A stretch of 64,000 nucleotides of DNA, from NCBI GenBank assembly GCA_021613535.1, contig CP075494.1:682001-746000 (forward strand), written 5' to 3'. Both the position numbers and the translations under genes were made by a program. Below, piece by piece: positions 298-31,832 of the stretch. The notes under the pieces were generated by a model. It ran no database searches. It was given only the letters and a program-made list of their open reading frames with translations, and was not told the DNA's origin. Source of the stretch: Adineta vaga (Eukaryota > Animalia > Rotifera). Every line of letters begins with the position of its first letter. Within the stretch, counting starts at the first letter, position 1.

Positions 298-3200
298 ATG
301 GACTTAACTTCCTATCGACGAGTTGCATCTTCGGCACTTAAAGTTTCCGGCAGATCGAAAGCTATAGCTTCATATGCTCAACAACGTATTTGGCTCCATG
401 AGCAACTCTATTTTGATCGAATGTCTTCTTCACTAGCAATCTACAATATTCTTCTCCCATTAAGAATCAAATGTGGCTCGCTATCAGTAGAACATGTCCG
501 ACTCGCTATACTTGCAGTGCTTGAAAAGCATAAAGTTCTTCGAACGGCTGTTCGTTTTAATGCGGAAACAAATCAACTCGAACAAGAAGTACAACCACTC
601 AGCCATGATGCTTATTCGTTTGAACATACCCGAAATGTATGCTGTGCCGAACAACTGGATGCAATGCTCACGGCTGAAACAGTAACCAACTACTTTGATG
701 TAGAAAAGGGCAAAGTATTGCGTTGTCATTTAATACGAATCAATGACGAGAATGAATCTGTAAATCTTCACTCAGGGGATCTTCTTCTATTCACTGTTCA
801 CCATATTGCTTTCGATAATACTTCACTTCGATTATTTACTCTGGCCTTTGCCGAAGCATGCGGTCAATTAGAATCTGTACAGCCACCAAACAAATTACCA
901 CAATATGTTGACTTCACTCTTTATGAACAATCTTTAGTGCAATCATCGAGTGCCGAACGAACACGCCAGTTCTGGACATTATTGCTTCAGGATTATGATT
1001 GGACTAAAACATTTATATTACCGGTTAACAGCTCACAGATCACAACAACTGTTCGCTCTGGACGTGGCTATTCAATCGCATTTAATCTGAATGCTGATTT
1101 AGTACAAGCACAGATGGCATTTGCTGCACTTCACAATATTTCTATGTTTCAACTATATCTCGCTTGCTATTACGTGTTTCTTTTCAAATTAAGTTCAGTA
1201 CAAGATCTGTGCGTTGCCGGTACGTTCAATAATCGTCCTTTGGCAGAAATGAAATCGATGATTGGAATGTTTGCAAATACGATACCCTATCGAATCAATA
1301 TTAATCCAGACGGTTCATTCCAAAAGTTGGCTGAACAAGTACAACATTTATGCTTGTCCATTCTTAATCATGCTTATCTACCATATCAACAAATTCTTGG
1401 TGTTCAAGCAAACGAAAGATACCCGATGCCCCAAACATTCTTTCACTATGAATCACTTGTGTCTTCCACTACATATAGTACCACAGCGGAGATTGCTACA
1501 AATGATAAGAACGGTACGGTTTTCGATATTTATTATGATCGAGACCGATCACATGGCAATGGTATTGCCTTATTCGATATGACACTGGCTGTATCACATG
1601 ATCATCATGGAAAAGCTACAGAGTGCTTTCTAGAATGCTCAGCTGATTTGTTCCCCAATGAAATATACGTCAAACAGATGGTCGATCGCTTCCAATGTAT
1701 GCTTGAACAATTGTTTTTGGATCAAACATTTAATATCACCACACAATCCATGAATCAATTATCTTTGCTTCGTCCATCAGAAGTCAATGAAATCGATTCA
1801 ACTATCTTCAAGCGACTACCTAACATCAACGAAGGTAAAACTGCGAATTTTCTCTACAAAAGACTCTTTAAATGATATTTTTCTTTCTCTATTAGGACCT
1901 GCTTCATTTGCACAAGCTCGTATCTGGCATGATGAACATGTCAGATTTGATCCCAATCAACCTCAAGTGGCCATCTACAATATGCCATTTCTATTTCATA
2001 TTGAAAGTGGTTCATTATCTGTTGAAAGATTACGACAAGCTTTTCAATTAGTAATTATTAAACATAAAGCTTTACGTACTGCCCTTTATTTTGATAATGA
2101 TAAACAACAATTAATGCAACAAATTGTTAAATCAAAAGATAATGAAGAATATTTTACATTTAATGAATCGACATTGATTAAAAATGATGAAGATCTTATG
2201 AAAATAATGCATGAGGAACGAGGTAATCCTTATAATTTTAATCTTGAACAAGGAGTTGTTTGTCGTTTACATATTGTTTATGAAAATTTAAAAAATGATA
2301 ATCTTATAAAAGGTGATTCAATAATATTTAATTTTCATCATGCTTTATTTGATTTTCCATCAATGTATATATTTCATTGTGATCTTAATTCTGCATATAC
2401 AAATGGTTGTTTAGAATATAATGATGAAATACAATTACGATATCTTGATTGTAAGTTATATATAGATTAGATTTATAATTATTTCATTATATTTTATAGA
2501 TTCTATTATTGAACGAGAAATGCCAATGACAATAGCTAATAATTATTGGTTTGAAATGTTACATGATTATGATATAAATCGTTCATTAGCATTACCATTT
2601 GATCATCATCGTATTTCTAATGAACAAAGAACAGGACGTGGAATATCAATATCATTTGATTTTAATGAAGATCTTTCAAAACATTTTCTTTTATTTAGTA
2701 TAAATAATAATATAACAATTGAACAATTATCACTTGCTTGTTATTTTATTTTCTTATTTAAATTAACAAATGAAGAAGAAGATGATCTTTGTATTGGAAT
2801 GAATATAAAAGGAAGATATAAAGATGAATTACAATCAATTATTGGAATGTTTGTTAATGCAATTCCATTACGTCTTCAACATATTAATCCATATATATCA
2901 TTTTCTTATTTTATTCAACAAGTACAAGAAATGATAATAAATTCAATGAAAATGTCTTATTTTCCATTACAACGTATTCTTAATCAACATTCAAATAATG
3001 AAATAAGATTAGAATCTTTTCTTGATACATCATTTGAATATGAAACAAATGAAACAAAATTTAATAAAGAACATATAAATATTGATGAAATGAAATTATC
3101 ATTGGTACCCTATTCACTTAATATTAAAACAAATGAAATTGTTAGTAAATTTGATTTTTCATTACGAATTCTTCATAATAAAACAAATGAACAATTTACA

Positions 3201-6200
3201 TGTGAAATTAATGCATCATTAGATTTATTTAATCAAAAAACTATTGATTTAATATCACAAAGATTTCATATTCTTCTTCAACAACTCTTTTTATTTTCAA
3301 CATTTAATTTAATTAATCAACCTATTGTTGAATTATCATTATTATTATCTGATGATATACAAACTATTCAATCCATTAATTATAATAATAATAATAATAC
3401 AAATGAAATGTCTTTTAAATCATTAGATAAAGTACATTATGAATTTATAAAACAAACATTATATCATCCACAAAAGATTTCAATTTGTTTAGAAGAACAA
3501 TCATTAACTTATGCAGAATTACTTAATAAAGTTTATCAATTAATGAATTATATTAATAAACAAAATTGTTCAAATAAAATTATTTGTCAATGTGTTGAAC
3601 GTAGTATTGAAATGATTATTGGTCAATTAGCAATAATTACTTTAGGTTCTTCTTATTGTGCATTATCACCTGATGATCCTCCTACTCGTTTATCTAATCT
3701 TGTAACACAAACAAACTCATCATTTGTTCTTGTTCATTCAGCTACTGAAAATCATTTTAATAATCATCAAAATATAATTAATATTCAAAATTATCTCTTT
3801 GATAATACTATCAATAATAATAATAATATTGATTTTAATTTATCTTTGAATGACATTGCTTAGTAAGTTCTTATGAGTTTTTCTTTCTTTGTTTTTTTAA
3901 AATATTTTTCTTCTTCTTCTATTTCTTTAGTATTGTTTTTACAAGTGGTTCTACAGGAAATCCAAAAGCTGTAAGTATCTTTAGTTTTTCGATATATTCT
4001 AAATGTTTTACGAACTCGTGTTTCTCCAGGTTCAAATTACACATCGAAATTTTTCTTCATGCATCTCTTCTTTTCAACACTTAAGTATAATTACCAGCCG
4101 TGATGTGGTTGTTCAAATGGCTCAATGCTCTTTTGATGTTCATGTCAAAGAATGCCTTGGCACGATGATGTTAGGCGCTACCCTCGTTCTTTTACGTCCA
4201 CATGGTTATATGGATTTTAATTACTTATCAACTACCATACAGCAACATAAAGTCACTTTCTTCTCCGTTGTTCCAACAATGATGACAGTCTTGTTTGAAC
4301 ATCTCGTTGATAATGATCAAGTAGATCGTTTGTCTACTGTACGATCATTTGGCTTTCTTGGTATGTTTCTCTTTTTTCCCCTCAAATATACAGAAGTTTC
4401 TTCATTTTTTCCATTATCCTAGGCGAAGCAATTATTTGCACAACTCTCGCTAAAATGATAGAATATTTTGGTGAATCCGATATCAATTTTTACAATTTGT
4501 ATGGTCCAGCCGAATGTACACTTACATCAGTCTATCACCACATAACCAATGAAGATATTACAAGTGGTGTGATTCCTATTGGTATTCCATTTCCTGGCAT
4601 GCAAGCACAAATTCTTGATCAATATTATCAACCAGTTATTCCTGGTCATGTCGGAGAATTATATTTAGATGGTATACAACGTTTTCCTGGTTATTATGAT
4701 CGAGATGATTTGACTCAACGAGTTCTTATTGGATCATTTTATCGTACCGGTGATCTTGTTAGTCAAAATTCAATAACTGGCAATATATATTATCTGGGAA
4801 GACAAGATTTTCAAGTAAAACTACGTGGACAACGTATTGAATTAGCTGAAATTGAACGATGTCTTTTGGAGATTGTTTCAGCTTGTGTTGTTATTAAACA
4901 TGATGAATATCTTGTTGCCTATGTACAAGGACGTGATATTGATTTAGATACACTTCGTAATCATTGTCAATCTCGTTTACCTCCATTTATGATTCCATCA
5001 ATATTCATTGTTATGGAATCTTTTCCATTGAATAAAAGTGGAAAACTCGATCGACAAATGTTACCTAAACCTACAGAATTACCAACAATATCAAGTAATG
5101 ATCTTATCGAATTAAATACTGATATGGAGATTGAGATACATAAATTATGGTGTGAAATACTTAAATGTGATGTTCCTGCCTCTAAAACAAGTAATTTCTT
5201 TTCTGTGGGTGGTCATTCAATGCTTCTTATGCAACTCTATCATCGTTACCAAACTTTATTCATGTTTGATAGTAAAACCATTTCAATAACTTCTTTCTTT
5301 CGTCAATCAACCATTGGTGAACATGCTAAGTTATTAGAAGGTGTAGCGGATACAGTTACTAGTCATAAAATAACATCATGGTTACCATTACATATAAATG
5401 AAGGTAAATCTTATTATGTTTGAGGAAAGAATCGAAACTTTATTTTACTAATTATTTCATGTAGGTGTAGCATCATTTGCTCAAGAGAGAATTTTTCTTG
5501 ATGAGCAAATTCGATTTGCGACAACCGGCAAACATATGTATACGGTTCCACTAATATATCGTGTTTCAACCCACAGTAAATCTGTATTAGTATCGCGGCT
5601 GCAAAACGCAGTTCGAGAAGTGATTCGTAAACATAGTATTCTACGTACAGCACTTCGAATGAACACAACCGGTACGGTCACGCAATTATCAACTGATGGT
5701 TCCGATGGAGAACTCTTCGGTTTTAGTATACTTCATGCAGATGGTAACATGAAAAACATCTCCAAAATGATTCATGATTCAAATCTCTTCAATTTAAATG
5801 AAGGACGTGTTCTTCATTGTCATATTATTCGTCAACACTCACCTTCATTGCAAGATGATGCTGATCAACTCACTACCAACGACATCATCTTATTTCATAT
5901 TCATCACTCAGCATTTGATGGTATATCAACATCAATTTTCATGCGAGATCTTTCTCTTGCATATAATGATAATGATCTATTACCAATGGATGATAACACT
6001 CTACAATATATTGATTATTCAGTATATGAACGTCAAATGGATATGACATTATCAGGTGAATTTTGGGAAGCCCAACTCGATGGATATGATTTAGCGAATA
6101 AGTTGGTAATACCATTCGATCGACATCGATTACCTAACGATGAACGAACAGGAAAAGCTTCAATTGCTCAATTTTCATTTGACAATCAACTCTTACGCTC

Positions 6201-9200
6201 TTTTCTTACCTATGCTTCTACATTAAATGTAACACCATTTCAACTTGGTCTTGCTACATTCTATGCATTTCTTTTCAAATTAAGTAATGGTCAACAAGAT
6301 CTATGTATTGGTAGTGTTAATGCAAATCGATATCGAACTGAATTACAAGATATTATCGGAATGTTTGTTGCTACACTTCCTTATCGTATTCAATTAGATT
6401 CATCTCATTCATTCAAACAACTTGTTCAACAAGTTCGAAATTTATGTTTATCAATTCTAGAACATTCACATTATCCTCTTCAATATATCATTGGTAATCA
6501 ACATTCACCCGCTTTTCTTGAAATTATGTATGATTTTATTACAATATCATCTAATAATGAACAAATTAATCTTGATGGATCTATACTTGAACCAATATCA
6601 TTGGATAAAGATGATTTTGTTGCTAAATTTGATCTGATGTTAAGTTTTACACAGAAATCGTCGAACGAAATATCATGTAGTTTAATTTGTTCACAAGATC
6701 GATATGATCAATCAACAGTAGAAATATTACTTGAACGATTTTCACACCTTCTAAGTGACTTGTTTGTTGAACAAAAGTATGACCTCACCAAGCAACCCAT
6801 CGATCAATTATCTCTATTTCTTCCACGAGAAGTGAATGAAATAGAATCAAAAATCTTCAAGCGAATACCCAACGTTAACGAAGGTAAAACCACGAATTTT
6901 TTTACCAATGCTTCTTCAGAAGACATTTTTCTTTTGTTCGTAGGACCTGCTTCATTTGCACAAGCTCGTATTTGGCTTGATGAACGTGTCAGATTTGATC
7001 CCAATCAACCTCAAGTGGCCATCTACAATATGCCATTTCTATTTCATATTGAAAGTGGTTCATTATCTGTTGAAAGATTACGACAAGCTTTTCAATTAGT
7101 AATTATTAAACATAAAGCTTTACGTACTGCCCTTTATTTTGATAATGATAAACAACAATTAATGCAACAAATTGTTAAATCAAAAGATAATGAAGAATAT
7201 TTTACATTTAATGAATCGACATTGATTAAAAATGATGAAGATCTTATGAAAATAATGCATGAGGAACGAGGTAATCCTTATAATTTTAATCTTGAACAAG
7301 GAGTTGTTTGTCGTTTACATATTGTTTATGAAAATTTAAAAAATGATAATCTTATAAAAGGTGATTCAATAATATTTAATTTTCATCATGCTTTATTTGA
7401 TTTTCCATCAATGTATATATTTCATTGTGATCTTAATTCTGCATATACAAATGGTTGTTTAGAATATAATGATGAAATACAATTACGATATCTTGATTGT
7501 AAGTTATATATAGATTAGATTTATAATTATTTCATTATATTTTATAGATTCTATTATTGAACGAGAAATGCCAATGACAATAGCTAATAATTATTGGTTT
7601 GAAATGTTACATGATTATGATATAAATCGTTCATTAGCATTACCATTTGATCATCATCGTATTTCTAATGAACAAAGAACAGGACGTGGAATATCAATAT
7701 CATTTGATTTTAATGAAGATCTTTCAAAACATTTTCTTTTATTTAGTATAAATAATAATATAACAATTGAACAATTATCACTTGCTTGTTATTTTATTTT
7801 CTTATTTAAATTAACAAATGAAGAAGAAGATGATCTTTGTATTGGAATGAATATAAAAGGAAGATATAAAGATGAATTACAATCAATTATTGGAATGTTT
7901 GTTAATGCAATTCCATTACGTCTTCAACATATTAATCCATATATATCATTTTCTTATTTTATTCAACGAGTACAAGAAATGATAATAAATTCAATGAAAA
8001 TGTCTTATTTTCCATTACAACGTATTCTTAATCAACATTCAAATAATGAAATAAGATTAGAATCTTTTCTTGATACATCATTTGAATATGAAACAAATGA
8101 AACAAAATTTAATAAAGAACATATAAATATTGAGGAAATGAAATTATCATTGGTACCTTATTCACTTAATATTAAAACAAATGAAATTGTTAGTAAATTT
8201 GATTTTTCATTACGAATTCTTCATAATAAAACAAATGAACAATTTACATGTGAAATTAATGCATCATTAGATTTATTTAATCAAAAAACTATTGATTTAA
8301 TATCACAAAGATTTCATATTCTTCTTCAACAACTCTTTTTATTTTCAACATTTAATTTAATTAATCAACCTATTGTTGAATTATCATTATTATTATCTGA
8401 TGATATACAAACTATTCAATCCATTAATTATAATAATAATAATAATACAAATGAAATGTCTTTTAAATCATTAGATAAAGTACATTATGAATTTATAAAA
8501 CAAACATTATATCATCCACAAAAGATTTCAATTTGTTTAGAAGAACAATCATTAACTTATGCAGAATTACTTAATAAAGTTTATCAATTAATGAATTATA
8601 TTAATAAACAAAATTGTTCAAATAAAATTATTTGTCAATGTGTTGAACGTAGTATTGAAATGATTATTGGTCAATTAGCAATAATTACTTTAGGTTCTTC
8701 TTATTGTGCATTATCACCTGATGATCCTCCTACTCGTTTATCTAATCTTGTAACACAAACAAACTCATCATTTGTTCTTGTTCATTCAGCTACTGAAAAT
8801 CATTTTAATAATCATCAAAATATAATTAATATTCAAAATTATCTCTTTGATAATACTATCAATAATAATAATAATATTGATTTTAATTTATCTTTGAATG
8901 ACATTGCTTAGTAAGTTCTTATGAGTTTTTCTTTCTTTGTTTTTTTAAAATATTTTTCTTCTTCTTCTATTTCTTTAGTATTGTTTTTACAAGTGGTTCT
9001 ACAGGAAATCCAAAAGCTGTAATTATCTTTAGTTTTTCGATATATTCTAAATGTTTTACGAACTCGTGTTTCTTCAGGTTCAAATTACACATCGAAATTT
9101 TTCTTCATGCATCTCTTCTTTTCAACATTTGGGCATTTACACTAATTCAGATAATGTCATTCAAATGTCGCAATGTTCCTTTGATGCTCATATTCTAGAA

Positions 9201-12200
9201 ACGTTGGGCACCTTAATGTTTGGTGCTACAATCATTCTTCTAGGTGCTGGCCGTAATATGGATCTAGAGTATCTATCAACTACCATACAACAACATGAAG
9301 TGACGAATGTTGCTGTTGTTCCAACAATGATGACAGCCTTATACGATCATCTTGCCGATAATGATCAATTGCAACGTTTGTCTACTGTACGATCATTTGG
9401 CTTTCTTGGTATGTTTCTCTGTTTCCCCCTCAAATATACAGAAGTTTCTTCATTTTTTCCATTATCCTAGGCGAAGCAATTATTTGCACAACTCTTGCTA
9501 AATTGATGGATTATTTCAGTGAAAATACCATAAGATTCTACAATATGTACGGTCCAGCAGAGTGCACACTCGGATCGATTGCCCACCGCATAACCAATGA
9601 AGATATTACAAGTGGTGTGATTCCTATTGGTATTCCATTTCCTGGCATGCAAGCACAAATTCTTGATCAATATTATCAACCAGTTATTCCTGGTCATGTC
9701 GGAGAATTATATTTAGATGGTATACAACGTTTTCCTGGTTATTATGATCGAGATGATTTGACTCAACGAGTTCTTATTGGATCATTTTATCGTACCGGTG
9801 ATCTTGTTAGTCAAAATTCAATAACTGGCAATATATATTATCTTGGAAGACAAGATTTTCAAGTAAAACTACGTGGACAACGTATTGAATTAGCTGAAAT
9901 TGAACGATGTCTTTTGGAGATTGTTTCAGCTTGTGTTGTTATTAAACATGATGAATATCTTGTTGCCTATGTACAAGGACGTGATATTGATTTAGATACA
10001 CTTCGTAATCATTGTCAATCTCGTTTACCTCCATTTATGATTCCATCAATATTCATTGTTATGGAATCTTTTCCATTGAATAAAAGTGGAAAACTCGATC
10101 GACAAATGTTACCTAAACCTACAGAATTACCAACAATATCAAGTAATGATCTTATCGAATTAAATACTGATATGGAGATTGAGATACATAAATTATGGTG
10201 TGAAATACTTAAATGTGATGTTCCTGCCTCTAAAACAAGTAATTTCTTTTCTGTGGGTGGTCATTCAATGCTTCTTATGCAACTCTATCATCGTTATCAA
10301 ACTTTATTCATGTTTGATAGTAAAACCATTTCAATAACTTCTTTCTTTCGTCAATCAACCATTGGTGAACATGCTAAGTTATTAGAAGGTGTAGCGGATA
10401 CAGTTACTAGTCATAAAATAACATCATGGTTACCATTACATATAAATGAAGGTAAATCTTATTATGTTTGAGGAAAGAATCGAAACTTTATTTTATTAAT
10501 TATTTCATGTAGGTGTAGCATCATTTGCTCAAGAGAGAATTTTTCTTGATGAGCAAATCCGATTTAGTGGTGCTAGACATGATACGTATTCGGTGGGCAT
10601 CTACAACGAACTCAATGTCTTGAAGATTGCCAGCGGCACAGTATCCATCGCTCGTCTTAGACAAGCTTTTCGACATGTAATAAGAAAACATATGACGCTG
10701 CGAACTTCGCTTGCTCTCGAATACGTTCAAACGGGTCTTACACAACGCATCACGCAAATACACCATAAGTTCGATTTTGCACCAACACAAATATTCGACA
10801 ATGACAATCATCTTCATTCTCTTCTTCGAGAAACTAGTCATAATCCAAACTTATTTGATTTGAGAGATGGACATGTATTGTATTGTCAACTTTTTCGAAA
10901 ACGAATTTCAAACGACAGTTCTAACGATGAATTACTCTTCGCTCATGATCTTATTCTCATAGCTTTTCACCATATCACTTTTGATAGAAATTCCCGCCAA
11001 ATCTTCTTACAAGATCTTTCTCTTGCATATAATGATAATGATCTATTACCAATGAATGATAACACTCTACAATATATTGATTATTCAGTATATGAACGTC
11101 AAATGGATATGACATTATCAGGTGAATTTTGGCAAACACAACTTGATGGCTATGATTTAGAGAATAAGTTGGTGATACCATTCGATCGACATCGATTACC
11201 TAACGATGAACGAACAGGAAAAGCTTCAGTTGCTCAAATTACATTTGATCATCAACTTTCACAATCATTTCTCAATTATGCTTCAACATCAAATGTAACA
11301 CCATTTCAACTTGGTCTTGCTACATTCTATGCATTTCTTTTCAAATTAAGTAATGGTCAACAAGATCTATGTATTGGTAGTGTTAATGCAAATCGATATC
11401 GAACTGAATTACAAGATATTATTGGAATGTTTGTTGCTACACTTCCTTATCGTATTCAATTAGATTCATCTCATTCATTCAAACAACTTGTTCAACAAGT
11501 TCGAAATTTATGTTTATCAATTCTAGAACATTCACATTATCCTCTTCAATATATCATTGGTAATCAACATTCACCCGCTTTTCTTGAAATTATGTATGAT
11601 TTTATTACAATATCATCTAATAATGAACAAATTAATCTTGATGGATCTATACTTGAACCAATATCATTGGATAAAGATGATTTTGTTGCTAAATTTGATC
11701 TGATGTTAAGTTTTACACAGAAATCGTCGAACGAAATATCATGTAGTTTAATTTGTTCACAAGATCGATATGATCAATCAACAGTAGAAATATTACTTGA
11801 ACGATTTTCACATCTTTTATCTCAACTATTTGATTCATCAATATCTTCAATTGAAGAACAATTATCATTATATAAATTATCTATTATTTTACCAAAAGAA
11901 CAAATCATAATTGATACTATGAAAAATCATGATATTAATCGATCAGCAGCACCAAAACTGACCATTCCACAACTATTTTGTCAACAAGTAATGGATCATC
12001 CACAAAAGATAGCTGTTGAGCTTGACGAACAAATGTTAAGTTATAATGAATTATATTTTTATGTACAAGAATTATCAAGTATGCTGATAGATATAAATGA
12101 TGTAAAAGAAGGTGATATTGTATGTCAATGTGTAGAAAGAAGTATTTCAATGGTAAAACAAAGATTTCACATGAAGATTGTACACTTTTGAAAGCTTTAA

Positions 12201-15200
12201 TTGTTTGTATAGGTTATTGGAATTTTATCAATTGAGATGGTAGGTGCAGTCTATTGTCCACTATCACCACAAGATCCTCAACAACGACTGGAAACACTGG
12301 TGAACGAAACAAAAAGTAGTGTGATTCTTGTGCACAATTTGACTTGTGAAAAATTTGATATGGAATATATCACTATGAATATTGATATTTTAATTAATGT
12401 CAGTTGCAGTGTTATTGATACCAGTATCAATCATCTGTTGGATATTACGATAAAAGGTGATAATATCGCTTATATTATTTTCACAAGTGGCTCGACAGGC
12501 ATTCCTAAAGCAGTAAGTAGTTTGTATTAAATTGAGTTCAGTTTGTTACAGTTGTTGTCTCTCTAGGCTCAAATAAGACATCGAAATTTCGTTGAATCCA
12601 TTCGATCTTTGGTAGAAGTTGGCACATTTAATGGAAAGGATACAGTATTACAAATGGCTCGATGTTCATTTGATATCCATGTTGAAGATATAGTGGGTAC
12701 ATTATTAGTTGGCGCAACATTAGTTATGCTTCGACCAAGTGGTCTGATGGATTTTCAATATTTATGTGATGTAATTATTGATAAGAGCATTACCTATATA
12801 AATAGTGTACCAAGTTATCTCACAAGTCTATGCTCCTATCTGGAGACACGCTTTGAAGATGCATGCTGGAGTCGATTACGATCGCTGGTTTGTGGCGGTA
12901 AGTATATAATGAAGGAGTTGTACTGAAAAATTTCTCCTGAGAATTTGTTATACGATAGTTTTGAGAAAACAAGTTTGTTTTTTGAATATCTGGGATTAAT
13001 ATGTTTGACTAGCTGCTATTGTTCAAATGTTTTCATTGAGGAATGGAATTAATTCGTATTTACTTTATAGGTGAACCTTTACCAATTCAATTAGTACATA
13101 AATTAGACAAACATTTATCGTCAATGACACGAGCAAATGATCCATGCCGCATATGGAATCTTTATGGTCCAGCTGAGGTCACACTTGACTGTCTCTACCA
13201 TAACGTTAATCTTATGGATGAACAAAGTAGCGTTCCAGTTGGTCGTCTTTTACCTGGATATCAATGTATCGTTGTTGACGATTTCCTAGAGCCGATCTAT
13301 ATTGGCCAAGAAGGAGAGCTATTCGTCGGAGGTGTTGGTATCTTTGCTGGTTACCTTAGACGTGAGGATTTGAACGAACAAATATTAATCAATATCAACA
13401 ATCAACTGTTCTATCGTACTGGTGATCTAGTTCGATTGAATAGTGACAATCTCTTCTATTATGTCGGTCGAAAGGATCATCAAGTAAAACTTCATGGACA
13501 ACGTATCGAACTGGGCGAAATCGAACGATGTTTGCTTGATGTCTCATCAGATGTTTCGGCTTGTGTCGTTGTTAAATGGGGCAGTGATCATTTGGTAGCT
13601 TATGTTCAAAGCATTCATATCAATGAAGAACAATTACGCAACTATTGTCGATCTCATCTGCCACCATTCATGGTTCCTTCAATGTTCATCATTCTCGAAC
13701 ATTTACCAATGAGTGCAAATGGTAAACTCGATCGAAAGCTTCTTCCTACACCAGATATTGCTACACTTTCATTGAATTCTGCAATGTCGGGTAATGATCA
13801 GCAATGTACAGAACCAAAGAACGATATCGAAAGACGCATTCATTCACTTTGGTGTGAAATTTTGCAATGTAAACAAATATCCACCACCGTCAATTTTTTT
13901 GGTATTGGTGGTCATTCGCTGCTTCTCATTCAAATCTATCATCGATATAAGATAATGTTTAAGTTTGACACTCATGCAGTTAACATTGCTCAAATGTTCC
14001 AACATTCGACCATTGTCGATCATGCTTGTTTCATTCAACAAGCACAAGATACTGATCGACAAGAACACGAAGAAGAAGAAGAATATAACTGGCTTCCTCT
14101 ACACATCATTCAAGGTCAAGTATCATTTGCACAAGAAAGAATTTTTCTTGATGAGCAAATTCGTTTCGGTTCTCAAGGTAATCGTATGTATGGTGTGCGA
14201 CTAGCCTATGGTATTTCGAATTGTACAAAACCTGTTTCCATCAAACGGCTACGTCAGGCAATTCAAATACTTATTACTAAGCATTCAGCGTTACGCACAA
14301 ATATTTTTCTTGATATGGCAGGTGAAGTCATACAATCTGCAGTACCAATCATCGATTCAGACGAATTACTCTTTGGTTTCACCGTTCTTCACATCGATAA
14401 CCATGATATGGAAGACATCTCCAAAATGATTCATGATTCAAATCTCTTCAATTTAAATGAAGGACGTGTTCTTCATTGTCATATTGTTCGTCAACACTCA
14501 CCTTCGTTGCAAGATGATGATGATCAACTCACTACCAACGACATCATCTTATTTCATATTCATCACTCAGCATTTGATGGTATATCAACATCAATTTTCA
14601 TGCGAGATCTTTCTCTTGCATATAATGATAATGATCTATTACCAACGGATGATAACACTCTACAATATATTGATTATTCAGTATATGAACGTCAAATGGA
14701 TATGACATTATCAGGTGAATTTTGGCAAACACAACTTGATGGCTATGATTTAGAGAATAAGTTGGTGATACCATTCGATCGACATCGATTACCTAACGAT
14801 GAACGAACAGGAAAAGCTTCAGTTGCTCAAATTACATTTGATCATCAACTTTCACAATCATTTCTCAATTATGCTTCAACATCAAATGTAACACCATTTC
14901 AACTTGGTCTTGCTACATTCTATGCATTTCTTTTCAAATTAAGTAATGGTCAACAAGATCTATGTATTGGTAGTGTTAATGCAAATCGATATCGAACTGA
15001 ATTACAAGATATTATTGGAATGTTTGTTGCTACACTTCCTTATCGTATTCAATTAGATTCATCTCATTCATTCAAACAACTTGTTCAACAAGTTCGAAAT
15101 TTATGTTTATCAATTCTAGAACATTCACATTATCCTCTTCAATATATCATTGGTAATCAACATTCACCCGCTTTTCTTGAAATTATGTATGATTTTATTA

Positions 15201-18200
15201 CAATATCATCTAATAATGAACAAATTAATCTTGATGGATCTATACTTGAACCAATATCATTGGATAAAGATGATTTTGTTGCTAAATTTGATCTGATGTT
15301 AAGTTTTACACAGAAATCGTCGAACGAAATATCATGTAGTTTAATTTGTTCACAAGATCGATATGATCAATCAACAGTAGAAATATTACTTGAACGATTT
15401 TCACATCTTTTATCTCAACTATTTGATTCATCAATATCTTCAATTGAAGAACAATTATCATTATATAAATTATCTATTATTTTACCAAAAGAACAAATCA
15501 TAATTGATACTATGAAAAATCATGATATTAATCGATCAGCAGCACCAAAACTGACCATTCCACAACTATTTTGTCAACAAGTAATGGATCATCCACAAAA
15601 GATAGCTGTTGAGCTTGACGAACAAATGTTAAGTTATAATGAATTATATTTTTATGTACAAGAATTATCAAGTATGCTGATAGATATAAATGATGTAAAA
15701 GAAGGTGATATTGTATGTCAATGTGTAGAAAGAAGTATTTCAATGGTAAAACAAAGATTTCACATGAAGATTGTACACTTTTGAAAGCTTTAATTGTTTG
15801 TATAGGTTATTGGAATTTTATCAATTGAGATGGTAGGTGCAGTCTATTGTCCACTATCACCACAAGATCCAAAACAACGTCTGCAGACTCTAGTGAAAGA
15901 AACTAGAAGTCATCTTGTTCTCGTCCATTCATTGACACAAAGCAAACTTGATGCAAATGGAATCACGATGAACATGGACACAACAATAAATGTAAATAGA
16001 ATAATAAGCGATAATGATCTTGATCGCCTGTCATGCATTAATGTAACAACCGAGAGTATTGGTTATATTATTTTCACAAGTGGTTCTACAGGCATACCAA
16101 AAGCAGTTAGTGTTAAATAATTGTTTTGAAAACATATGTTTATATAATTTCGTGTCCTTTTTAAGGCTCAATTCCGACAACGAAATTTTATTGAATATAC
16201 TCGATCGTTTGTTGAAGTGGGAGTATTCAGCAAAAACGATACTGTACTGCAAACGACTAAATGTTCATTTGATATCCATGTTGAAGATCTTATTGGAACA
16301 TTTGTTATTGGTGCATCATTAGTCATGATGCGTCCAGATGGTCTCATGGATTTTCCATACTTGATTGATTTAGTTGATAGCAAAAAAATAACCTATTTCA
16401 ATAGTGTACCGAGTTATCTTGCAGCGTTGTGTTTATATCTTGATAGATGCTTGGAAAACGTCTCTTTAAATCATGTTCGATCTATCTGCTCAGGTGGTAA
16501 GTACAAAATCATTAAAGATAAGACTTAAATTTGGTCTTTTTGGAATGATTTTATTCTAAAGAAAGAAGTTTAGTAGTTGCGGGAAAAGGACGAACGTCAA
16601 GTCTTTCTATCGATGATTTAAGAAAATTCGATTAGTTTTTCTTATAAAAAATTATTAACATAAATACTGTTTTGTAGGCGAAACTCTACCAATTCAATTG
16701 ATACATCACTTAAACAAACATTTCGCGTCAACATCTGAAAATCGATGTCATATTTGGAATCTTTATGGTCCTGCTGAAATCACTATTGGCTGCACTATTC
16801 AACTAGTTGATGCTACTTGTGAACAGAGTACTATTCCAATCGGTTCCTTGATTCCTGGTTATCGTTGTGTAATCCTCGATGATTTTGGAGAGCCTGTCTT
16901 TGTTGGTCAAGAAGGTGAATTACTTGTGACTGGTGTAGGTGTTTATGCTGGCTATTTGGGACGTGATGATTTAACCGAGAAGGCACTTGTCCATATGCAT
17001 GACGAACTATTCTATAAAACTGGTGATCTTGTACGAGCGGACAATAACTGTGTAGTACATTACGTTGGTCGTAAAGATCATCAGGTCAAATTACATGGTC
17101 AACGCATTGAATTAGGTGAAATTGAACGTTGTTTACGTGACGCATCATCAGATGTCCTAGGCTCTGTCGTTGTTCAGTGGGGCAAAGATCACTTGATTGC
17201 TTATGTTCAAGGTTACAATCTTAATATAGAACAATTACGCAATTATTGCCGATCTCGTTTGGCACGTTTTATGATTCCATCATTGATTATTGCGCTGGAA
17301 AAATTTCCATTGAATCCAAATGGAAAATTAGATCGAAAGCTTCTTCCAACGCCAGACTTCTCAACAATGATTGAATCTCAAGATACTGATCAATCACAAT
17401 TAACAGAGCTTGAACAACGTCTATTGCCTATTTTTGCACAAGCATTTCATCTCGAATCACCGAATGTTAATGTTCCATTTGGTCAACTTGGTGGTACTTC
17501 ATTAGATGTCATCATGGCACTTTCTATGATTCGAGAACAAATCTATAAAAATATTGGAGTTACCGTTCTTTATGACAATCCATCAATAAGACAACTCGCG
17601 CAAATTCTCGAGCCATTGATCATCGACCAAGACGAAGAACAAAAACAAAATATATCTACAACACTAACAACGCCCCAACTTGAAGAAGATCAATATCGAG
17701 TCATGCCATCAATATTTATTGAAACATTAGGCATACTAGTTCTCATATGTCAATGGTTATTTCCAATATGGATGGCATATCGTTATAATTGTTACTTCTC
17801 TATCTTGTTAATGCCATTAGTTCATATGTTAATGTATGTTATCTGCCAACATTTATTACTTTGGTCAGAAACTAAGGTGACAAAAGTCAACATGTTGTAT
17901 TCGTGGAGTTATTATCGATGGTGGTTTCTAGAACGTTTATGGTCAATTAATAATTCATATTGGTTAAAATATCTGTTGGGTACACCATTTTATAATTTTT
18001 ATCTGCGGTTATGTGGTGCACGAATTGGTCGTGGTGTTCATATTTTTTCAACATTAATTGATGCACCTTGGTTACTTGAAGTGGGTGATTCGACATTCAT
18101 CGATACTGATGCAATCTTTTCTAATCTATCCTACTATGAACAAACATATAAACTTAATCTAATTCGTATTGGATCATATTGCTCGATTGGTACACGTTGT

Positions 18201-19718
18201 GTCCTTTATGATGAAGTCACAATACCAGATAATACTTATATTGAATCTATGTCTAAACTGACTGGTGATGTTTCGCCAACAATAAAACATACATCCATCA
18301 ACGATCGATCTTTCTCATGGAAACAAGTTATTTATCAATTAATATGTCTCCTTTGTCTTATAATCATCCATAGTACTCTTCTAACTTTAACTTACAAGAT
18401 ATATCAATTTTGTTTAACTATTTGTATGCCAATACCGATTGCTATCGCCTTAAGTTGGTTGTTCTGGACTATAATGTGTCTCTCCGTTGTTATGTTCTTA
18501 TTGAAATATATCATAGGATCTGTAACACCAGGCAATTATCCAGTCAATTCTTATTACTTTTTACATCGAGTATGGTTACGTCAATTGATAATATCGTCAT
18601 TTCATCGTTCGTATGAATTCTTATCATCATACAGCACAATCTCTAATGTTTTACTTTCTTGGTTAAATGCCGATATCGAAGATGACGTTAAATTTGGTGA
18701 ATTTCAACCAATTCTATCTTTTCCATCAAATCTTCTTAAAATTCAACAAGGTGTAACTACGTTTGCAAAAGTTAGATTAGCTCCATTTGAAATAACACCA
18801 GCGGGTGATTGTCGTTTAAATACGATTATACTTGGTTCTGGTTCAAATCTTGGTAATGGATGCACATTATTGCCTGGCACGCGACTTCCTAATAAAACTA
18901 TGGTCGGTAATTTGACTTTAATCACTGAGAATACATCTATCTCTGGTGCTGGATCAGTATTGCTCGGTATTCCATCTCGTCAAATGCCTTTTATAATGCC
19001 CGAAGAAGAAACAATGTCTATAGATAAATTACCATCATTGAAATCTTCATCTTTGCGCATTTTTATGAGTACATGTATGATTTACTTACTAAGCAAATGT
19101 ATATTTACTACTATCTATTGGCTATTACCTACTTTCATTGCACCAATAGTTCATGCATGTCTTTTCTGTATAATGCATCGTTACTTAATTTTAAGTACAT
19201 CATCAGAAGCAACTTTTACCTATTCAGAGACAATCACTCGTACACATGAATTCATTTCTACAGCTCTAATTGAATTTAATATCTTCATCGGTCCATTTTT
19301 ATCAGGAACACAATATCTTGTTCATCTCTTTCGTATACTTGGTGCTCATATTGGACAAGATGTCATTTTACCTACTATTGGTTGTCTTACCGATCCTCAT
19401 CTTATAACAATTGGTAATCATGTTCGTCTTCAAACAGAAGCTTGTCTTCAGGTTAATATATTATAATACAAATCTGTCTTTATGATAATTGTTTTTTTCT
19501 TCTTCTATTTTTAGCCTCATACATTTGAACAACGTATATTTAAAGTGGCACCAATTATTGTTCAAGATTCCAGTATACTGATGAGCTATTCAAATGTACT
19601 TGCTGGATCAACACTTCACGGTCGAAATCGTCTTTATCCTCTTACACTTGTCATGAAATATGATCAATTACCGTTGAATACGACTTGGTCCGGTGTACCA
19701 GCACGACAGATTGACTAA
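298..19718 (+). CDS. Giant multimodular NRPS, C-C-A-T-C-C-A-T-C-A-T-C-A-T plus Pls-type membrane terminal domain; 20 exons, ~6016 aa
   Basis: Exons by GT-AG and frame: 298-1834, 1896-2450, 2500-3862, 3931-3970, 4030-4360, 4423-5403, 5465-6883, 6944-7498, 7548-8910, 8979-9018, 9078-9408, 9471-10451, 10513-12152, 12213-12512, 12567-12897, 13071-15745, 15806-16105, 16166-16496, 16678-19451, 19515-19718 (sum 18051, divisible by 3). C domains start S(F/Y)AQxRI and carry HHIAFD, HHALFD, HHSAFD, HHALFD, HHITFD, HHSAFD. Each A domain has FTSGSTGxPK, NxYGPAE, Y(R/K)TGD, GRxDxQVKLxGQRIELxEIE and GKLDR. T-domain Ser motifs are GGHSM, GGHSM, GGHSL, GGTSL. Confidence 0.93.
1896..5517 (+). repeat. Copy 1 of ~3.6 kb intragenic duplication (C2-A1-T1); copy 2 at 6944-10565
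   Basis: Constant offset of 5048 bp (ORFs 2520/7568, 4003/9051, 4455/9503); introns are also almost identical. Confidence 0.97.
6944..10565 (+). repeat. Copy 2 of ~3.6 kb intragenic duplication (C4-A2-T2)
   Basis: Near-identical to 1896-5517 except ~9129-9378 and ~9490-9590. Confidence 0.97.
11012..12277 (+). repeat. ~1.27 kb duplication (C-terminal half of C plus start of A); copy at 14605-15870, partial third copy at 5946-6746
   Basis: Offset 3593 (ORFs 11935/15528, 12237/15830). 5757-6746 also matches from 14416 onward. Confidence 0.95.
17700..19718 (+). other. Pls/PosA-like NRPS terminal domain (6 TM helices, three hexapeptide-repeat beta-helix segments)
   Basis: Three pairs of hydrophobic helices, each followed by an LbH-like segment: YLRLCGARIGRGVHI...LLEVGDSTFI...IRIGSYCSIGTRCVL; LGSGSNLGNGCTLLPG; FRILGAHIGQDVIL...LITIGNHVRL. 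Ends PHTFEQRIFK...LYPLTLVMKYDQLPLNTTWSGVPA, which matches the Pls-type C-terminus as I recall it. Confidence 0.8.
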
Positions 19719-19868
19719 AATAAATTTAATTTACTTGTTATAATGTCTTTTTTCAAATTTTTAATATATATATATATTTATTGTAAATATGGTTTGTATT
19801 TAAACGCTTTTTTCAGATTTTTTTAACTTATTCTTCTCTCGGTCCAATTTGGAAATCTTCAAATTAGA

Positions 19869-21362
19869 ATGGCATGGTGGTTTTCCTTAATTTTAGTCTA
19901 TTTAATTAGTGTAGTGATATTTCATATTTACATTCGTTATTTATCTACTCAACGACATAATTTTAATTCAAAATATCCACCTGTAATAATCGAACCTTGG
20001 TATTGTCCATTTCTAGGTTCTATTCTTTCGATGTTAGATCTTGAATCATCTGTGAATAGATGGTCTACAAAATATGGTGATAATTTTACATTATTTATGT
20101 TTGGAAAATATTATACAGTTATTACAAATTATGTTGATTTGAAAAAATATTATCATGCAACTGAAGAAATGCTCAGTATGTCAAGAGCAGCATCAATTAT
20201 GTTAGGATCATCATATCCTGAAAGTCAATATTTAATAGAATATAATGTCGTACCTTATTTACATAGTATTTTAAATTCCAATCATTTATCTCGTATGATA
20301 TCAAATACTGAAATGGTTATAAATGATTATTTTAATAAACAAAATGGACAATTTTGGATTGAAAATAGTAATGAAACTAAAATTGATTTATTTCAATTTA
20401 TGTATCGTCTTGTCGTACGTATGAATTCAATTAATTTTATATCATCAAATATTTACAAAAATCATGCCGAAGAAGTTATTGATATATTTGCTTCATTAAC
20501 GGTTGAAAAAGATTTCCTAAGTCCAATTATAGATGGTGGTAAAAAACTATTAAAACTAAAAACTAAAAAAGATATTGCTTGGGAACGATGGATATCTCTT
20601 CTCATGCCAGATATTGAACGATGTTTAAATATGATTGAAAATCATATTGAACCAACTGATTTCGATATAATCTATGAAAATGTTAAATATTCAAAAGAAG
20701 AATTAGAAAAACGAGGTGAATTATTTACACCACGATTAGTGGCTTATTTTGCTTATATGTCTATTGTTCCAGCACAACATAACACATATATATCAGCGTC
20801 ATATATAATTCTCGAATGGATTCGTCATGAATATGATGAAATTGGTCAACGAATTAAAAATGAAATTGATAATGTACCAGTAAATGGTAAATTAACAATT
20901 GAATATTTGAATTCAATGGAATATGTGCAAGGATGTATTTATGAAGTAATTAGATTGCATACTGATTTTCTATTGAGTTTGAGACATGCTGGTGAAGATA
21001 TTCCTCTTTCACAAGACAAATTTATTCCATCGGGAAATCTTGTTGTAACTCCATTAACTGGTGCAAAAGATTTATATCTGAATCCAATGGAATTTGATCC
21101 CGAAAGACATTTGAAACCACGAGAAGAGATGAAAGCAGATCCATATAGAGCATTACCTTTCGGACGAGGCAGACATGCTTGTGTTGGAGAAAGATATGCT
21201 AAAATGCAAATTAAAATTTTATTAGTTCGATTATCAAAACTATGCAAAATGGAATTAATGTCGGAATCGATCAATTATGAAACAACAATCAATAAAAAGC
21301 AATTGGCAGGATTAAGTCATCCAACAAAACCTGTTTTCATTAAAATCTCCAAGAATGTATAA
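19869..21362 (+). CDS. Cytochrome P450, intronless, CYP51/CYP7-like
   Basis: N-terminal TM anchor, I-helix PAQHNT, EVIR (ExxR), FDPERH, heme motif PFGRGRHACVG; AATAAA at ~21418. Confidence 0.92.
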   Translation: MAWWFSLILVYLISVVIFHIYIRYLSTQRHNFNSKYPPVIIEPWYCPFLGSILSMLDLESSVNRWSTKYGDNFTLFMFGKYYTVITNYVDLKKYYHATEEMLSMSRAASIMLGSSYPESQYLIEYNVVPYLHSILNSNHLSRMISNTEMVINDYFNKQNGQFWIENSNETKIDLFQFMYRLVVRMNSINFISSNIYKNHAEEVIDIFASLTVEKDFLSPIIDGGKKLLKLKTKKDIAWERWISLLMPDIERCLNMIENHIEPTDFDIIYENVKYSKEELEKRGELFTPRLVAYFAYMSIVPAQHNTYISASYIILEWIRHEYDEIGQRIKNEIDNVPVNGKLTIEYLNSMEYVQGCIYEVIRLHTDFLLSLRHAGEDIPLSQDKFIPSGNLVVTPLTGAKDLYLNPMEFDPERHLKPREEMKADPYRALPFGRGRHACVGERYAKMQIKILLVRLSKLCKMELMSESINYETTINKKQLAGLSHPTKPVFIKISKNV

Positions 21363-25900: not shown

Positions 25901-28900
25901 ATGTTATTGATGAAAATGAATTTTATCAACAATTAAATGTAACACTTGAACAATTTTTTCATCAAATAAAAACAACATTTTTAGAATATATTGAAATAGT
26001 TCGTTTAGTTATACAAATTGATCAACCATTTACTCATATTGGAAGAGATTGGAAACAAATTTCATTAAATTTACACACAACTCCTATAGCAAATGAAGAA
26101 GCCTATAAAGTATGTTGATTTAAATTCATAAGTTTTTATAATCTAATAGATTTATTATAAAATATTCTTTTTCTTTTAGATTCATTTCGTTTTAAATAGT
26201 TTACATGATGATAATACAAGTTCAATTCCATGTATTTGTGCTATAAATAGATATTGTCATATTCCATTTGCTCTTTATGATGTTAAATATACAATTGGTG
26301 ATGTATTTAATATAAACAAAGCTTATACAATTCCTGGTCTAGTCGAAGGTTGTTTTGTTATTGATTCATTATTCTTATCAACATTAGAATGTTTTTATCA
26401 AAATTCCAAATGTTTTTCAATTCTAATTAAATATATAAAAGATAAATATATTCAAAATCAACGAAATCCAAAATGGATTTTGCCCCGTTCACTTATTTAC
26501 AATGAAAATTTAAGTCGTTTTCCACCAAATATTTCTATTTCATCAATTATAGATGAAGTTATGATTGAAAAATGGATTTCATTAATTTCATTTAAAAATT
26601 ATTATGAAAAATGTTCACCAAATTCTTGTACTTATTCAACTAAAATTCGTTTGAAAACTTCATCTGAAATTTTAATAACATTAATTTCTATGATTAGTGG
26701 AATTATTTTAATATTACGTTTAATAATACCAAAATTTATTAAATTAATTTTTTATTTATTTAAATTACAAATCAATCGAGAACAACAAATTGTATCAGGT
26801 TATATCAATTATTTATAATAACTAATTTAGATAAAATTTTATTAAAAAATTTCGTTTTTTTTTAGTTCATCGAAAATTTATCGATCGAGTTCGATTTTTA
26901 ACAAAAAAATTAATAGAAATTTTATCAACAACATTAATTGATTTAAATATATTTCCAATAAATGATTTTCGACGAAATATTCATCCAATAACAGTTAAAC
27001 GTTTAGGTCAATGGGCAACTCGTCTTTATATTTGTCTTCTTCTAATTAGTCTTACAATTATTGCTATATATTATATTATTGAACCACAAAATTTAACTAA
27101 AATATTTAAACAACCAACATTTGATCGATACAATCAACTTCTAGATCAATATGATAATAAATTAAAATGTTTTTGTTCATCTTTAGCATCAACTTATGAT
27201 CATTATGTTACAATTGAAACAAAATTTCATCAAGTAAAAATAATATTTTGAAAAATGAAAATTTAATTTTAATAAATTCTTATTTAGATTTGTACAAGTG
27301 ATTTTATTTTAGAAGAATGGAGAAATAATTTAACAAAAAATCTTCTATATGATTTATCAATTTATGATTTAAATGATTATCGTCGTTTTCTTTCAATTCA
27401 TTTACAATTTCTACAAAATTTATGTGAACTTTCAATAAAATCAACGAAAACATATGTTAATCAATTTCTTAATTTATTTCTTATTTCATCAGAACTTTTA
27501 ACTAAAGATCAATTTGAAAATTATATTTATTCATCAATTGATCAAAATAAATTATATGATCGAACTAAACTTTCTCAATTACTTTCATTAATTTTACAAA
27601 TCAATCATGGAAATGGAATTATAACAACATATGGAACTAATTTTCAATATAAAGATTATCCACAAGGTTCAATACAAAGAAAATTATTTGTTAATAATAT
27701 AATTTATTCGAATTGTTCTTGTTTAATTCATTCGAATTGTACAAATCAAGGTTATTTTATTGATAAAAATCATTCAATTTTTATTCAAGGTTTTCGAATT
27801 GGATGTACACCAATTGAATCATTTCGTCTTTCAACACTTGAATGTTTTTATAATCAAACATGTGTTAATCTTATTGAAAAATATTTAATAAATAATGATT
27901 CAATTAAAACTCTTTTTTATGATAAAAATATAAATAAAACAATAAATGAATTAATTAATGAATTATTTATTGATAATTTTAATATTATATTAAATTATTC
28001 ATCTTATTATCATCAATGTTTACCTATAGATTGTTCATATTCTTATATACAAAAAATTAATTCAATTTATACATTAACACTTTTAATTGGTCTTCAAGGT
28101 GGTTTGACAATTCTTCTAAAATGGATTTCACCAAAAATAATTCAAATTCTATTTCTTATTTATCAATATCGAAAACAAAAAAGAAATATTATTCCAATAA
28201 ATCAATCAAATGAAATCAAAAATTTATCTAATAATCTTCAATTAACATCTCAAAATACTTTATTAGAGTATGTTTTAATTAATAAACTCTATATATATAT
28301 ATATATTTATAATATCTTTTATTTATAGAATTAATTCATATTCTATAAAACATATTTTAATATGGTTATTTGTAACAATAATATTAATAATAATTCTTCT
28401 ATTATTTTCTATTATTTATGCAAAATATCAACAAAAACAATCATTATCAACAATAACAGGTTATTAATCTTTCTATTTGATCGAATTCTTTTCTATAAAA
28501 TTCAATATTCTATATTTCATAGTTATTTCGACAACTTCAACTTCAACAAATAATATAATTATATCAAATATAACTACAGGTTAAGATATTCAAATATTTA
28601 TTATCTTTTTAATTTTTTCTCATAAAGAAGAGTCTATTAAACACGAGTAACGCTCTGATCTCTTGGATCTCACTTGATTTAATCCTAAACGGGGCAATAG
28701 ATAACTATGACTGTACACTCAGGTCTATATTCTCGTCAGCAGTCCATCCAGACTGTAGTCATATCTTTAAATCGAAAGCAAAGGACATGAATTTAATGTT
28801 TGTTTTTTTAAAAAGATTCTATAAACGATAAAAAATTATCATATTAGTTCTTAGATGATTATTCTGGTTTATTTAGATAGAAATTGTCAACTTAAATTTC

Positions 28901-30003: not shown

Positions 30004-30057
30004 ATTGTTTTGCTTTAATATATTTTAAATTAAATATTATTGCTTTTTCATGTCTAT

Positions 30058-30116
30058 TAAGGGTGTGGGTGTGGATGTTAGATAGAGGTAGTACCCTTAC
30101 CCACACCCGCCCTTCG
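30058..30116. repeat. Telomere-like palindromic element
   Basis: taagggtgtgggtgtgg...tagatagaggtagt...acccacacccgcccttc, between convergent gene 3' ends. Confidence 0.8.
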
Positions 30117-30271
30117 TGGGTGTGTGAATTTTAATAAGTAAACGATACACTATTCATTCAATACTCTTATCCGTACTTTAATCCAAAATATATGAAGGTT
30201 TACTTTATAAGGTTAAAGAAAATAATGGAAATGAATGAAAAGTATAAATGTTTCTGTTCTATCTGATATAG

Positions 30272-31406: not shown

Positions 31407-31625
31407 ATTTTATTATTACAAAATGTGTATGACCTGGTTCGAAAGGGGTTATATAGTCATATATTTTAAATCGTCATCGCATATTCAATCATATTAGTAA
31501 ATTTGGTAAAATACGGAACAGAAAGTCACGATCGAATTGCAATAGAGGGTGACACTGTACGATGTAAATTTCTCCAAATGAAATTCATTTGATCAATAAA
31601 TGAATATTTCGAAAATTATTTTGTC

Positions 31626-31693
31626 TTGAGGATGGGTGTGTGTGTGGTGTTGGTGTCGATAATACTCTTTCCTTCACCCACACATACACTCGA
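31626..31693. repeat. Telomere-like palindromic element
   Basis: ttgaggatgggtgtgtgtgtgg...cacccacacatacactcga, in the divergent SDR/UGT intergenic region. Confidence 0.7.
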
Positions 31694-31832
31694 TCACATA
31701 CGACATCTATCGAAATATTTTTCGAATTACAACTCCTATCTCTCTCTCTCATTGATTCTCAAAATGATGATTCATTCTTATATCAGTTATATAAAAGTAT
31801 GCCTTTTTTTCTTTAATATTTTCACAAGCCAA

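Follow-up and report, generated by a model that had tools for sequence, protein, structure and literature searches.

A four-module nonribosomal peptide synthetase of Adineta vaga with a predicted Pls/PosA-type terminal domain

How does a nonribosomal peptide synthetase (NRPS) part with its peptide when it has neither a thioesterase nor a reductase, and ends instead in a membrane domain resembling that of cationic homopolymer synthetases such as Pls and PosA? The question is raised by a gene of the bdelloid rotifer Adineta vaga, located on the + strand of contig CP075494.1 at positions 298-19718 of a 64,000-nt window, which is the whole stretch of DNA analysed here and to which all coordinates refer. 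We find that this locus is one open, intact gene and that sequence, topology and predicted fold support its tail as a Pls/PosA-type terminal domain. This domain probably replaces the usual release domain.

The gene and its terminal domain

Domain, family and fold searches were made exon by exon. Pfam on the exons and a survey of motifs agreed on four adenylation-thiolation (A-T) modules and six condensation (C) domains, with no match to a thioesterase or reductase family on any exon, as an earlier sequence-only reading of this DNA had described. The Pfam matches comprise six Condensation domains, four AMP-binding and PP-binding pairs and a Hexapep tail, in the order C1, C2-A1-T1, C3-C4-A2-T2, C5-A3-T3, C6-A4-T4 and tail (C-C-A-T/C-C-A-T/C-A-T/C-A-T plus the tail):

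298..19718, + strand: whole NRPS-Pls coding region (splice model and phase bookkeeping; four 3' introns in spliced contigs)
298..1734, + strand: C1, N-terminal condensation domain, HHIAFDN (Pfam, motif; also the first domain in the Rotaria socialis homologue)
1896..5403, + strand: module 1, with C2 (HHALFDF), A1 and T1 (GGHS at about 5208) and four internal introns (Pfam, motifs)
5465..10451, + strand: module 2, with C3 (HHSAFDG), C4 (HHALFDF), A2 and T2 (Pfam, motifs)
10513..14030, + strand: module 3, with C5 (HHITFDR), A3 (FDIHVED) and T3 (Pfam, motifs)
14111..17640, + strand: module 4, with C6 (HHSAFDG), A4 (FDIHVED) and T4 (GGTS at about 17490) (Pfam, motifs; spliced contigs 14605-19900)
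17700..19718, + strand: predicted Pls/PosA-type terminal domain (TIGR02353, hydropathy, AlphaFold, ESM Atlas)
17712-17846, 18327-18500 and 19059-19175, + strand: hydrophobic hairpins (hydropathy), each followed by a left-handed beta-helix domain
19515-19715, + strand: end of the third beta-helix (last exon)

The core motifs of a type I multimodular NRPS (HHxxxD, A3-A10, GGxS) are present throughout: HHxxxD in six of six C domains, with the canonical HHSAFDG in C3 and C6, complete core motifs A3, A5, A6, A7, A8 and A10 in all four A domains, and the GG[HT]S serine in all four T domains. Where such an enzyme would have a terminal thioesterase, reductase or terminal C domain, this gene has the Pls-type tail. 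The solved structures closest to C1, to the C2 type and to the C6 type are ordinary condensation domains (fuscachelin PCP-C, teixobactin Txo1/2, LgrA and TycC). In both tandem C-C didomains (298-3290 and 5465-8340) a C6-type domain precedes a C2-type domain, and both types carry HHxxxD. We considered epimerisation (E) domains within these pairs and rejected them: all six domains have C-type motifs (SxAQxR.., HHxxxD, IGMF..) and the best PDB matches are to ordinary condensation domains. From the C-type N-terminal and core motifs, the pairs are thus C-C and not E-C.

The tail matched the TIGRFAM model TIGR02353 in both of the last two exons. The match of the last large exon (exon 18) scored 120.3 bits (E 8e-35) and that of the last exon (67 aa) 44.6 bits (E 6.5e-12); the matches are colinear, covering profile positions 78-196, 529-632 and 634-695 of 695. 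Since the last-exon match ends at profile position 695 of 695, the stop codon directly follows the final residue of the model. The similarity to the terminal-domain profile that had been expected is colinear, although the score stays under the curated cut-off, a point taken up below. The C-terminal half of A4, T4 and the tail share a single exon (16678-19451), which makes the tail the last domain after an A-T pair. Hydropathy and AlphaFold together gave six transmembrane helices in three pairs and three hexapeptide domains (C1-C3 in the Pls/PosA family). This is the arrangement of Pls and PosA, in which six membrane helices form three pairs and three acetyltransferase-like domains are modelled with threefold packing (PMC8117764, PMC8506220, PMC10522769).

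The AlphaFold model, which covers tail residues 1-584 and was built on 39 aligned sequences, had a predicted local distance difference test (pLDDT) value of 88.9 and a predicted template modelling score (pTM) of 0.89, and places helical hairpins at tail residues 5-53, 207-272 and 450-501, alternating with beta-helices. Compared over residues 1-584, the model resembled ESM Atlas clusters named Pls/PosA with template modelling (TM) scores of 0.84-0.87 by query, and a fungal (Ascomycota) cluster with a TM score of 0.81. A search of the PDB by sequence and by fold found no solved Pls tail and only weak matches to hexapeptide acyltransferases. The alignment of 39 rows, made with bacterial relatives, lists one invariant column and 15 nearly invariant ones, and the window residue agrees in each. 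Taken together, the sequence match, the topology and the modelled fold bear out the proposed tail of six transmembrane helices and three beta-helices and support its assignment as a Pls/PosA-type terminal domain. We also considered whether a Pls gene had recently been fused to an unrelated NRPS and rejected this. All of A1-A4 are about 35% identical to bacterial Pls-type A domains; A4 is no nearer to these than A1-A3, and there is therefore no sign of a recent fusion.

The splice model links open reading frame (ORF) pieces via splice sites, with continuity checked by phase arithmetic and split codons. It contains 19 coding exons and 18 introns, all GT-AG, of which 16 measure 49-68 nt and the other two 173 and 181 nt. 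By exon-by-exon phase bookkeeping over 298-19718, the coding frame of 18,111 nt (~6,036 aa) has no internal stop, with a sensible residue at each split codon across the 18 exon joins. With the core motifs all kept as well, the gene is intact, as had been proposed; the 20 exons counted earlier become 19 coding exons in our model, and a non-coding 5' exon may account for the difference. A polypyrimidine-AG at about 225-236, 5' of the coding start, may be the mark of a 5' untranslated region or a trans-splice acceptor. The window is AT-rich (GC about 0.2-0.36), as are its bases 1-297, where no NRPS-like frame was found.

298-1834, 1896-2450, 2500-3862, 3931-3970, 4030-4360, 4423-5403 and 5465-7498, + strand: exons 1-7 (splice model)
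7548-8910, 8979-9018, 9078-9408, 9471-10451, 10513-12152 and 12213-12512, + strand: exons 8-13 (splice model)
12567-12897, 13071-15745, 15806-16105, 16166-16496, 16678-19451 and 19515-19718, + strand: exons 14-19 (splice model)
15746-15805, + strand: intron of 60 nt, GT..AG, skipped in contigs of three runs
16106-16165, + strand: intron, skipped in contigs of three runs
16497-16677, + strand: intron of 181 nt at the conserved GG/E position of the A domain, skipped in contigs of three runs
19452-19514, + strand: intron within the third beta-helix domain of the tail, skipped in contigs of three runs

Contigs from three runs of one 2024 sequencing study span 14605-19900 and skip exactly the four predicted 3' introns, whereas a 2013 DNA run retains these introns and differs from the window by 1-5%. 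The exact absence of the introns from the spliced contigs shows that C6-A4-T4-tail is transcribed and spliced as predicted and that the tail is joined to modules. On whether the locus is split into separate transcripts, the spliced contigs thus answer for this 3' part; upstream of 14605 the contigs break in repeated C domains, and for this reason the other 14 introns stay inferred, from splice-site consensus, motif restoration and either identity to the confirmed introns or a position conserved with them. Several of the 14 are sequence duplicates of confirmed introns. The intron at the GG/E position measures 173 nt in module 3 (12898-13070) and 181 nt in module 4 (16497-16677), compared with 62 nt in modules 1 and 2. 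The 2013 DNA run, which bears the same species label, differs from the window by 72 substitutions and 9 gaps across some 4 kb (15832-19900), which indicates allelic or strain divergence of about 2%. Bacterial contamination was rejected on the strength of the introns, the composition, the chromosome-scale contig and the spliced contigs.

Substrate pockets and a duplicated module

The residues that line the substrate pockets were mapped via the FDxxxx(E), GG/E and NxYGPxE motifs, with positions given in what we take to be PheA numbering. This mapping agrees with an ungapped match to PosA chains 8G95-8G98 if the chain index is taken to be offset by two residues from the published numbering. In every module, Stachelhaus positions 235-301 fall within a 331-nt exon:

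4030-4360, + strand: pocket exon of A1 (motif mapping); module 1 code D V K S G L L L T K
9078-9408, + strand: pocket exon of A2 (motif mapping); module 2 code D A L A G L M L G K
12567-12897, + strand: pocket exon of A3 (motif mapping); module 3 code D I E N V G L L D K
16166-16496, + strand: pocket exon of A4 (motif mapping); module 4 code D I E N C G L I G K

Both A3 and A4 read FDIHVED and have Asp235 together with Glu239, the equivalents of PosA Asp217 and Glu221 in a diamino-acid pocket; position 239 is Lys in A1 and Leu in A2. A1, with its Lys, may thus favour an acidic residue, and A2 a hydrophobic one. In PosA, Asp217 and Glu221 bind the alpha- and side-chain amines of ornithine, and they are conserved in cationic homopolymer synthetases (PMC10522769). 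The A3 anchor was located in 21 bacterial relatives, and all 21 have FDx[SAW]xEE. From the Asp235 and Glu239 of A3 and A4, an inference of moderate strength, the last two residues of the peptide are thus probably diamino acids resembling Lys, Orn or Dab.

Modules 1 and 2 form a 5,048-bp tandem duplicate (1900-5403 versus 6948-10451, with the copy running from 6897 on). Over about 3.5 kb they are ~100% identical in DNA, introns included, except at 4030-4540, where the identity falls to 68-91% per 100-nt bin. This divergent stretch is the specificity pocket of the A domain. Such a pattern points to a duplication or conversion that took place very recently, with only the pocket replaced or diversified, and the pair would offer a natural case of module duplication followed by specificity replacement.

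Paralogues, origin and neighbouring genes

A six-frame search of the genome (100.8 Mb, 6 contigs) found at least 13 tail loci, at 34-51% identity. The locus is therefore not singular, and it has homologues in Rotaria besides. Leaving out the window's own tail, the 12 tail matches with the best scores include 11 without an internal stop, and all 12 paralogous tails examined have NRPS modules in the 20 kb upstream on the same strand, frequently in a T-C-C-A-T pattern. In 11 of the 11 paralogues tested, a match to the last exon lies just 3' of the tail match, mostly ~60 nt off, and this common spacing implies that the family expanded after the intron had been gained. Most of the tail-bearing paralogues are no further than about 0.2-1.7 Mb from a contig end and are thus subtelomeric; examples are those at C5:48 kb, C3:235 kb, C3:19.87 Mb, C4:14.9 Mb, C2:15.98 Mb and C6:13.69-13.71 Mb. 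The two at this last position face each other, 21 kb apart.

When the tail was compared with 1.84 billion representative proteins, 56 matches fell below 1e-30, and the named ones are from Rotaria and Adineta. After the Rotaria and Adineta matches comes a gap, and the next matches are bacterial A-T-tail proteins, about 1,300 aa long and 25-31% identical. Among the matches listed, the longer bacterial variants add a PPTase, DUF418, FMN dehydrogenase or HGSNAT-like domain to A-T-tail, and a bacterial metagenome protein fragment consists of a KS-AT-ACP polyketide module that ends in a Pls-type tail. In a phylogenetic tree the bdelloid tails form one clade, separate from the bacterial proteins, with a support of 99 in the Shimodaira-Hasegawa-like approximate likelihood ratio test (SH-aLRT). 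A Rotaria sequence adjoins the window tail, and a formyltransferase-A-T-C-A-T-tail protein from the eukaryotic assembly GCA_017884045.1 is sister on a long branch; neighbours of its gene include histone and 7tm_3 genes. The Rotaria socialis homologue (6,349 aa) has six C domains, four A domains and the tail. Its tail is 43% identical to that of the window gene, and its first C domain has 47% identity to C1 and the same start point.

Horizontally acquired NRPS and polyketide synthase (PKS) genes have been reported to be expanded in bdelloids (Nowell et al. 2024, PMC11258130; PMC10531068). The window gene has the features of such a domesticated gene, namely 18 introns, host-like composition at a GC of about 0.3, transcription and membership of a separate clade, and it is shown to descend from a horizontally acquired bacterial-type NRPS.

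A cytochrome P450 gene (within 19719-21362) starts 150 nt past the NRPS stop on the same strand. The spliced contigs of the three runs extend about 2 kb beyond 19900, through the 150-nt spacer and into this gene, and the NRPS and P450 genes may be co-transcribed or merely have overlapping transcript ends. Within about 1.2 kb downstream of 11 paralogous tails, no adjoining P450 was found. Other neighbours (28855-34271 and 54311-56281) encode an FG-GAP repeat protein, a short-chain dehydrogenase (- strand, with an intron), a UDP-glycosyltransferase-like ORF, an ORF of the CD225/interferon-induced transmembrane family and a leucine-rich repeat protein. Together with the NRPS and the P450, these neighbours might constitute a biosynthetic cluster.

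Release at the membrane and comparison with known systems

We give a probability of about 60% to the reading in which the tail takes over from the release domain and hands the T4-bound peptide to an amine at the membrane. This is amide-forming offloading in general terms; the estimate includes two more specific versions considered below, and their likelihoods are not to be added to it. The four modules would build a tetrapeptide tethered to T4, and the extra C domains might provide N-acylation or another modification of it. The membrane tail would then stand in for a thioesterase. By analogy with the epsilon-poly-lysine and delta-poly-ornithine synthetases, it would catalyse the attack of a free amine on the carrier-bound thioester, and the peptide would leave as an amide (isopeptide) at, and possibly through, the membrane. 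In Pls and PosA the C-terminal domain is required for polymerisation (PMC10522769, PMC8117764, PMC8506220), with the donor bound to the carrier and the acceptor chain free (PMC8117764, PMC10522769). The acceptor may be a second copy of the peptide, an oligo(diamino acid) made by iteration of A4-T4-tail, an intramolecular amine or a small amine; the probable diamino residues of modules 3 and 4 could supply acceptor amines. The Asp/Glu pocket signature of A3 and A4 thus makes isopeptide products plausible.

Several observations weigh against offloading by the tail. To our knowledge, no multimodular enzyme with a Pls-type tail has been characterised by biochemistry or by its metabolites. The summed TIGR02353 score of the tail is about 165 bits, compared with a curated cut-off of 423, and the tail is 19-24% identical to bacterial proteins in the 39-row alignment; from the low score, it is a divergent relative of the Pls/PosA family. 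The pocket codes come from motifs and the ungapped PosA match with its assumed offset and are not structure-based. In the paralogues, the last A domain mostly has Gln and not Glu at position 239, which implies that the tail is not always given a diamino acid across the bdelloid family. The RNA evidence covers 14605-19900.

A stronger claim, that a Pls-type polymerase was recruited as the terminating step and that the enzyme makes an isopeptide-linked hetero-oligomer, either of tetrapeptide repeats or as a peptide-capped oligo(diamino acid), is tentative and, in our judgement, rather doubtful. The sequence-only reading had suggested a sequence-defined polymer of tetrapeptide units, with a putative role in defence or desiccation protection. 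In this first form, one of several products that the chemistry would permit, the tail would iteratively join tetrapeptides head-to-side-chain into a sequence-defined isopeptide polymer or ladder. Pls and PosA tails are indeed polymerases that use a carrier-bound donor and a free acceptor (PMC10522769, PMC8117764), and from the Asp/Glu signature of A3 and A4 each unit would bear free side-chain amines. However, no product of this kind is known, the enzymes characterised so far have an acceptor tunnel that accepts linear single-residue homo-oligomers, and the presence of the same tail in paralogues whose last pocket is not acidic points to a broader role in offloading; we therefore consider a tetrapeptide polymer unlikely. 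In the second form, A4-T4-tail would iterate like Pls to give an oligo(diamino acid), whose growing N-side end would occasionally be capped by the peptide of modules 1-3 and C6. A4-T4-tail does have the complete three-domain architecture of Pls, A4 has the Asp/Glu pocket, and the chain in Pls is free while the donor is carrier-bound (PMC8117764, PMC10522769). This idea is quite unlikely to be right, though, given that A4 is no nearer to the bacterial Pls-type A domains than A1-A3 are, and that with an intact C6, T4 should normally be acylated by the upstream chain.

It seems improbable that the tail is a mere membrane anchor or export device, or catalytically dead, with release by hydrolysis, spontaneous cyclisation or a trans-acting enzyme. 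A profile score so far under the curated TIGR02353 cut-off would fit a dead tail, and the P450, short-chain dehydrogenase and UDP-glycosyltransferase genes nearby would fit the action of other enzymes. Yet the window residues match the invariant and the 15 nearly invariant columns of the 39-sequence alignment, the fold is predicted to be kept at high confidence, the domain has kept an open frame in Rotaria and in at least 11 further paralogues that have diverged, and no thioesterase or reductase domain was found in the gene. That the locus is not one gene at all, being an assembly artefact of repeated modules or at least two separate transcripts, is very improbable. Modules 1 and 2 are nearly identical over about 3.5 kb, the short-read contigs break in repeated C domains, and the RNA evidence starts at 14605. 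However, the two copies differ sharply and solely in 4030-4540, which an artefact would not produce; the frame is continuous, the largest gap being the confirmed 181-nt intron; and the Rotaria socialis protein likewise has six C domains, four A domains and the tail. Amide-forming offloading by the tail remains the reading that we prefer.

A literature search for a multimodular NRPS with a Pls-type tail, in bdelloids or elsewhere, found none, and a term search of the texts of PMC11258130 and PMC10531068 found no mention of a Pls/PosA terminal domain; the focal cluster of PMC11258130 is a PKS-NRPS hybrid with a predicted cyclic depsipeptide product. The earlier statement that no animal multimodular NRPS with this tail has been characterised thus holds for publications, but such proteins are already present in public databases as hypothetical or unnamed entries:

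A. vaga I4U23_004507, 3,646 aa: three modules and the tail (public, hypothetical/unnamed)
GCA_017884045.1 protein, 3,171 aa: formyltransferase-A-T-C-A-T-tail (public, unnamed)

The architecture is uncharacterised, yet this locus is not the only one to have it. Every Pls/PosA enzyme characterised so far is a homopolymer synthetase with a single module, and a multimodular line ending in a Pls-type domain would represent a termination logic new to NRPS enzymology. Termination by such a tail predicts new peptide chemistry, that is, amide or isopeptide release at the membrane. If true, an isopeptide-linked hetero-oligomer would be a natural-product class known from no organism, made by an animal and by a family of at least 13 genes. 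An animal-borne, transcribed gene with at least 13 paralogues and Rotaria homologues provides a concrete, testable enzymatic hypothesis for bdelloid NRPS, and the paralogue family and the Rotaria homologues thus make up a defined gene set for expression, knock-down and metabolomics.

Like Pls of Streptomyces albulus and PosA of Acinetobacter baumannii, the window gene has an A-T pair followed by a domain of ~650-700 aa with three transmembrane hairpins and three hexapeptide beta-helices, and its adjoining A domain has an Asp/Glu diamino-acid pocket signature. The literature treats this family as single-module, three-domain enzymes, and its network analysis was limited to proteins of 1,100-1,800 aa (PMC10522769). 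Cationic homo-poly(amino acid) synthetases (Pls, PosA, PDAP, poly-Dab) have a single module and no C domain. Unlike Pls and PosA, which make homopolymers with one such module, the rotifer gene has four modules and six C domains upstream of the tail; it is also animal-borne and intron-bearing, and its tail, at 19-24% identity, scores below the family cut-off.

Among solved structures, only maltose and galactoside O-acetyltransferases and LpxA/LpxD resemble the soluble parts of the tail, with a Foldseek E value of 2e-3 at best. In the PosA modelling, the three beta-helices pack like an acyltransferase trimer (PMC10522769). Whereas the acyltransferases are soluble homotrimers acting on acyl-CoA or acyl-ACP, the rotifer tail has three copies in one chain, together with six membrane helices. 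The window gene resembles the bdelloid NRPS/PKS genes described previously (PMC11258130, PMC10531068) in being transcribed, intron-bearing, multimodular and part of a large bdelloid-specific expansion. Closest to it in architecture are the public unnamed proteins of A. vaga, Rotaria socialis and GCA_017884045.1, which have the same tail after a multimodular NRPS and differ from the window gene in the number of modules and in extra methyltransferase or formyltransferase domains.

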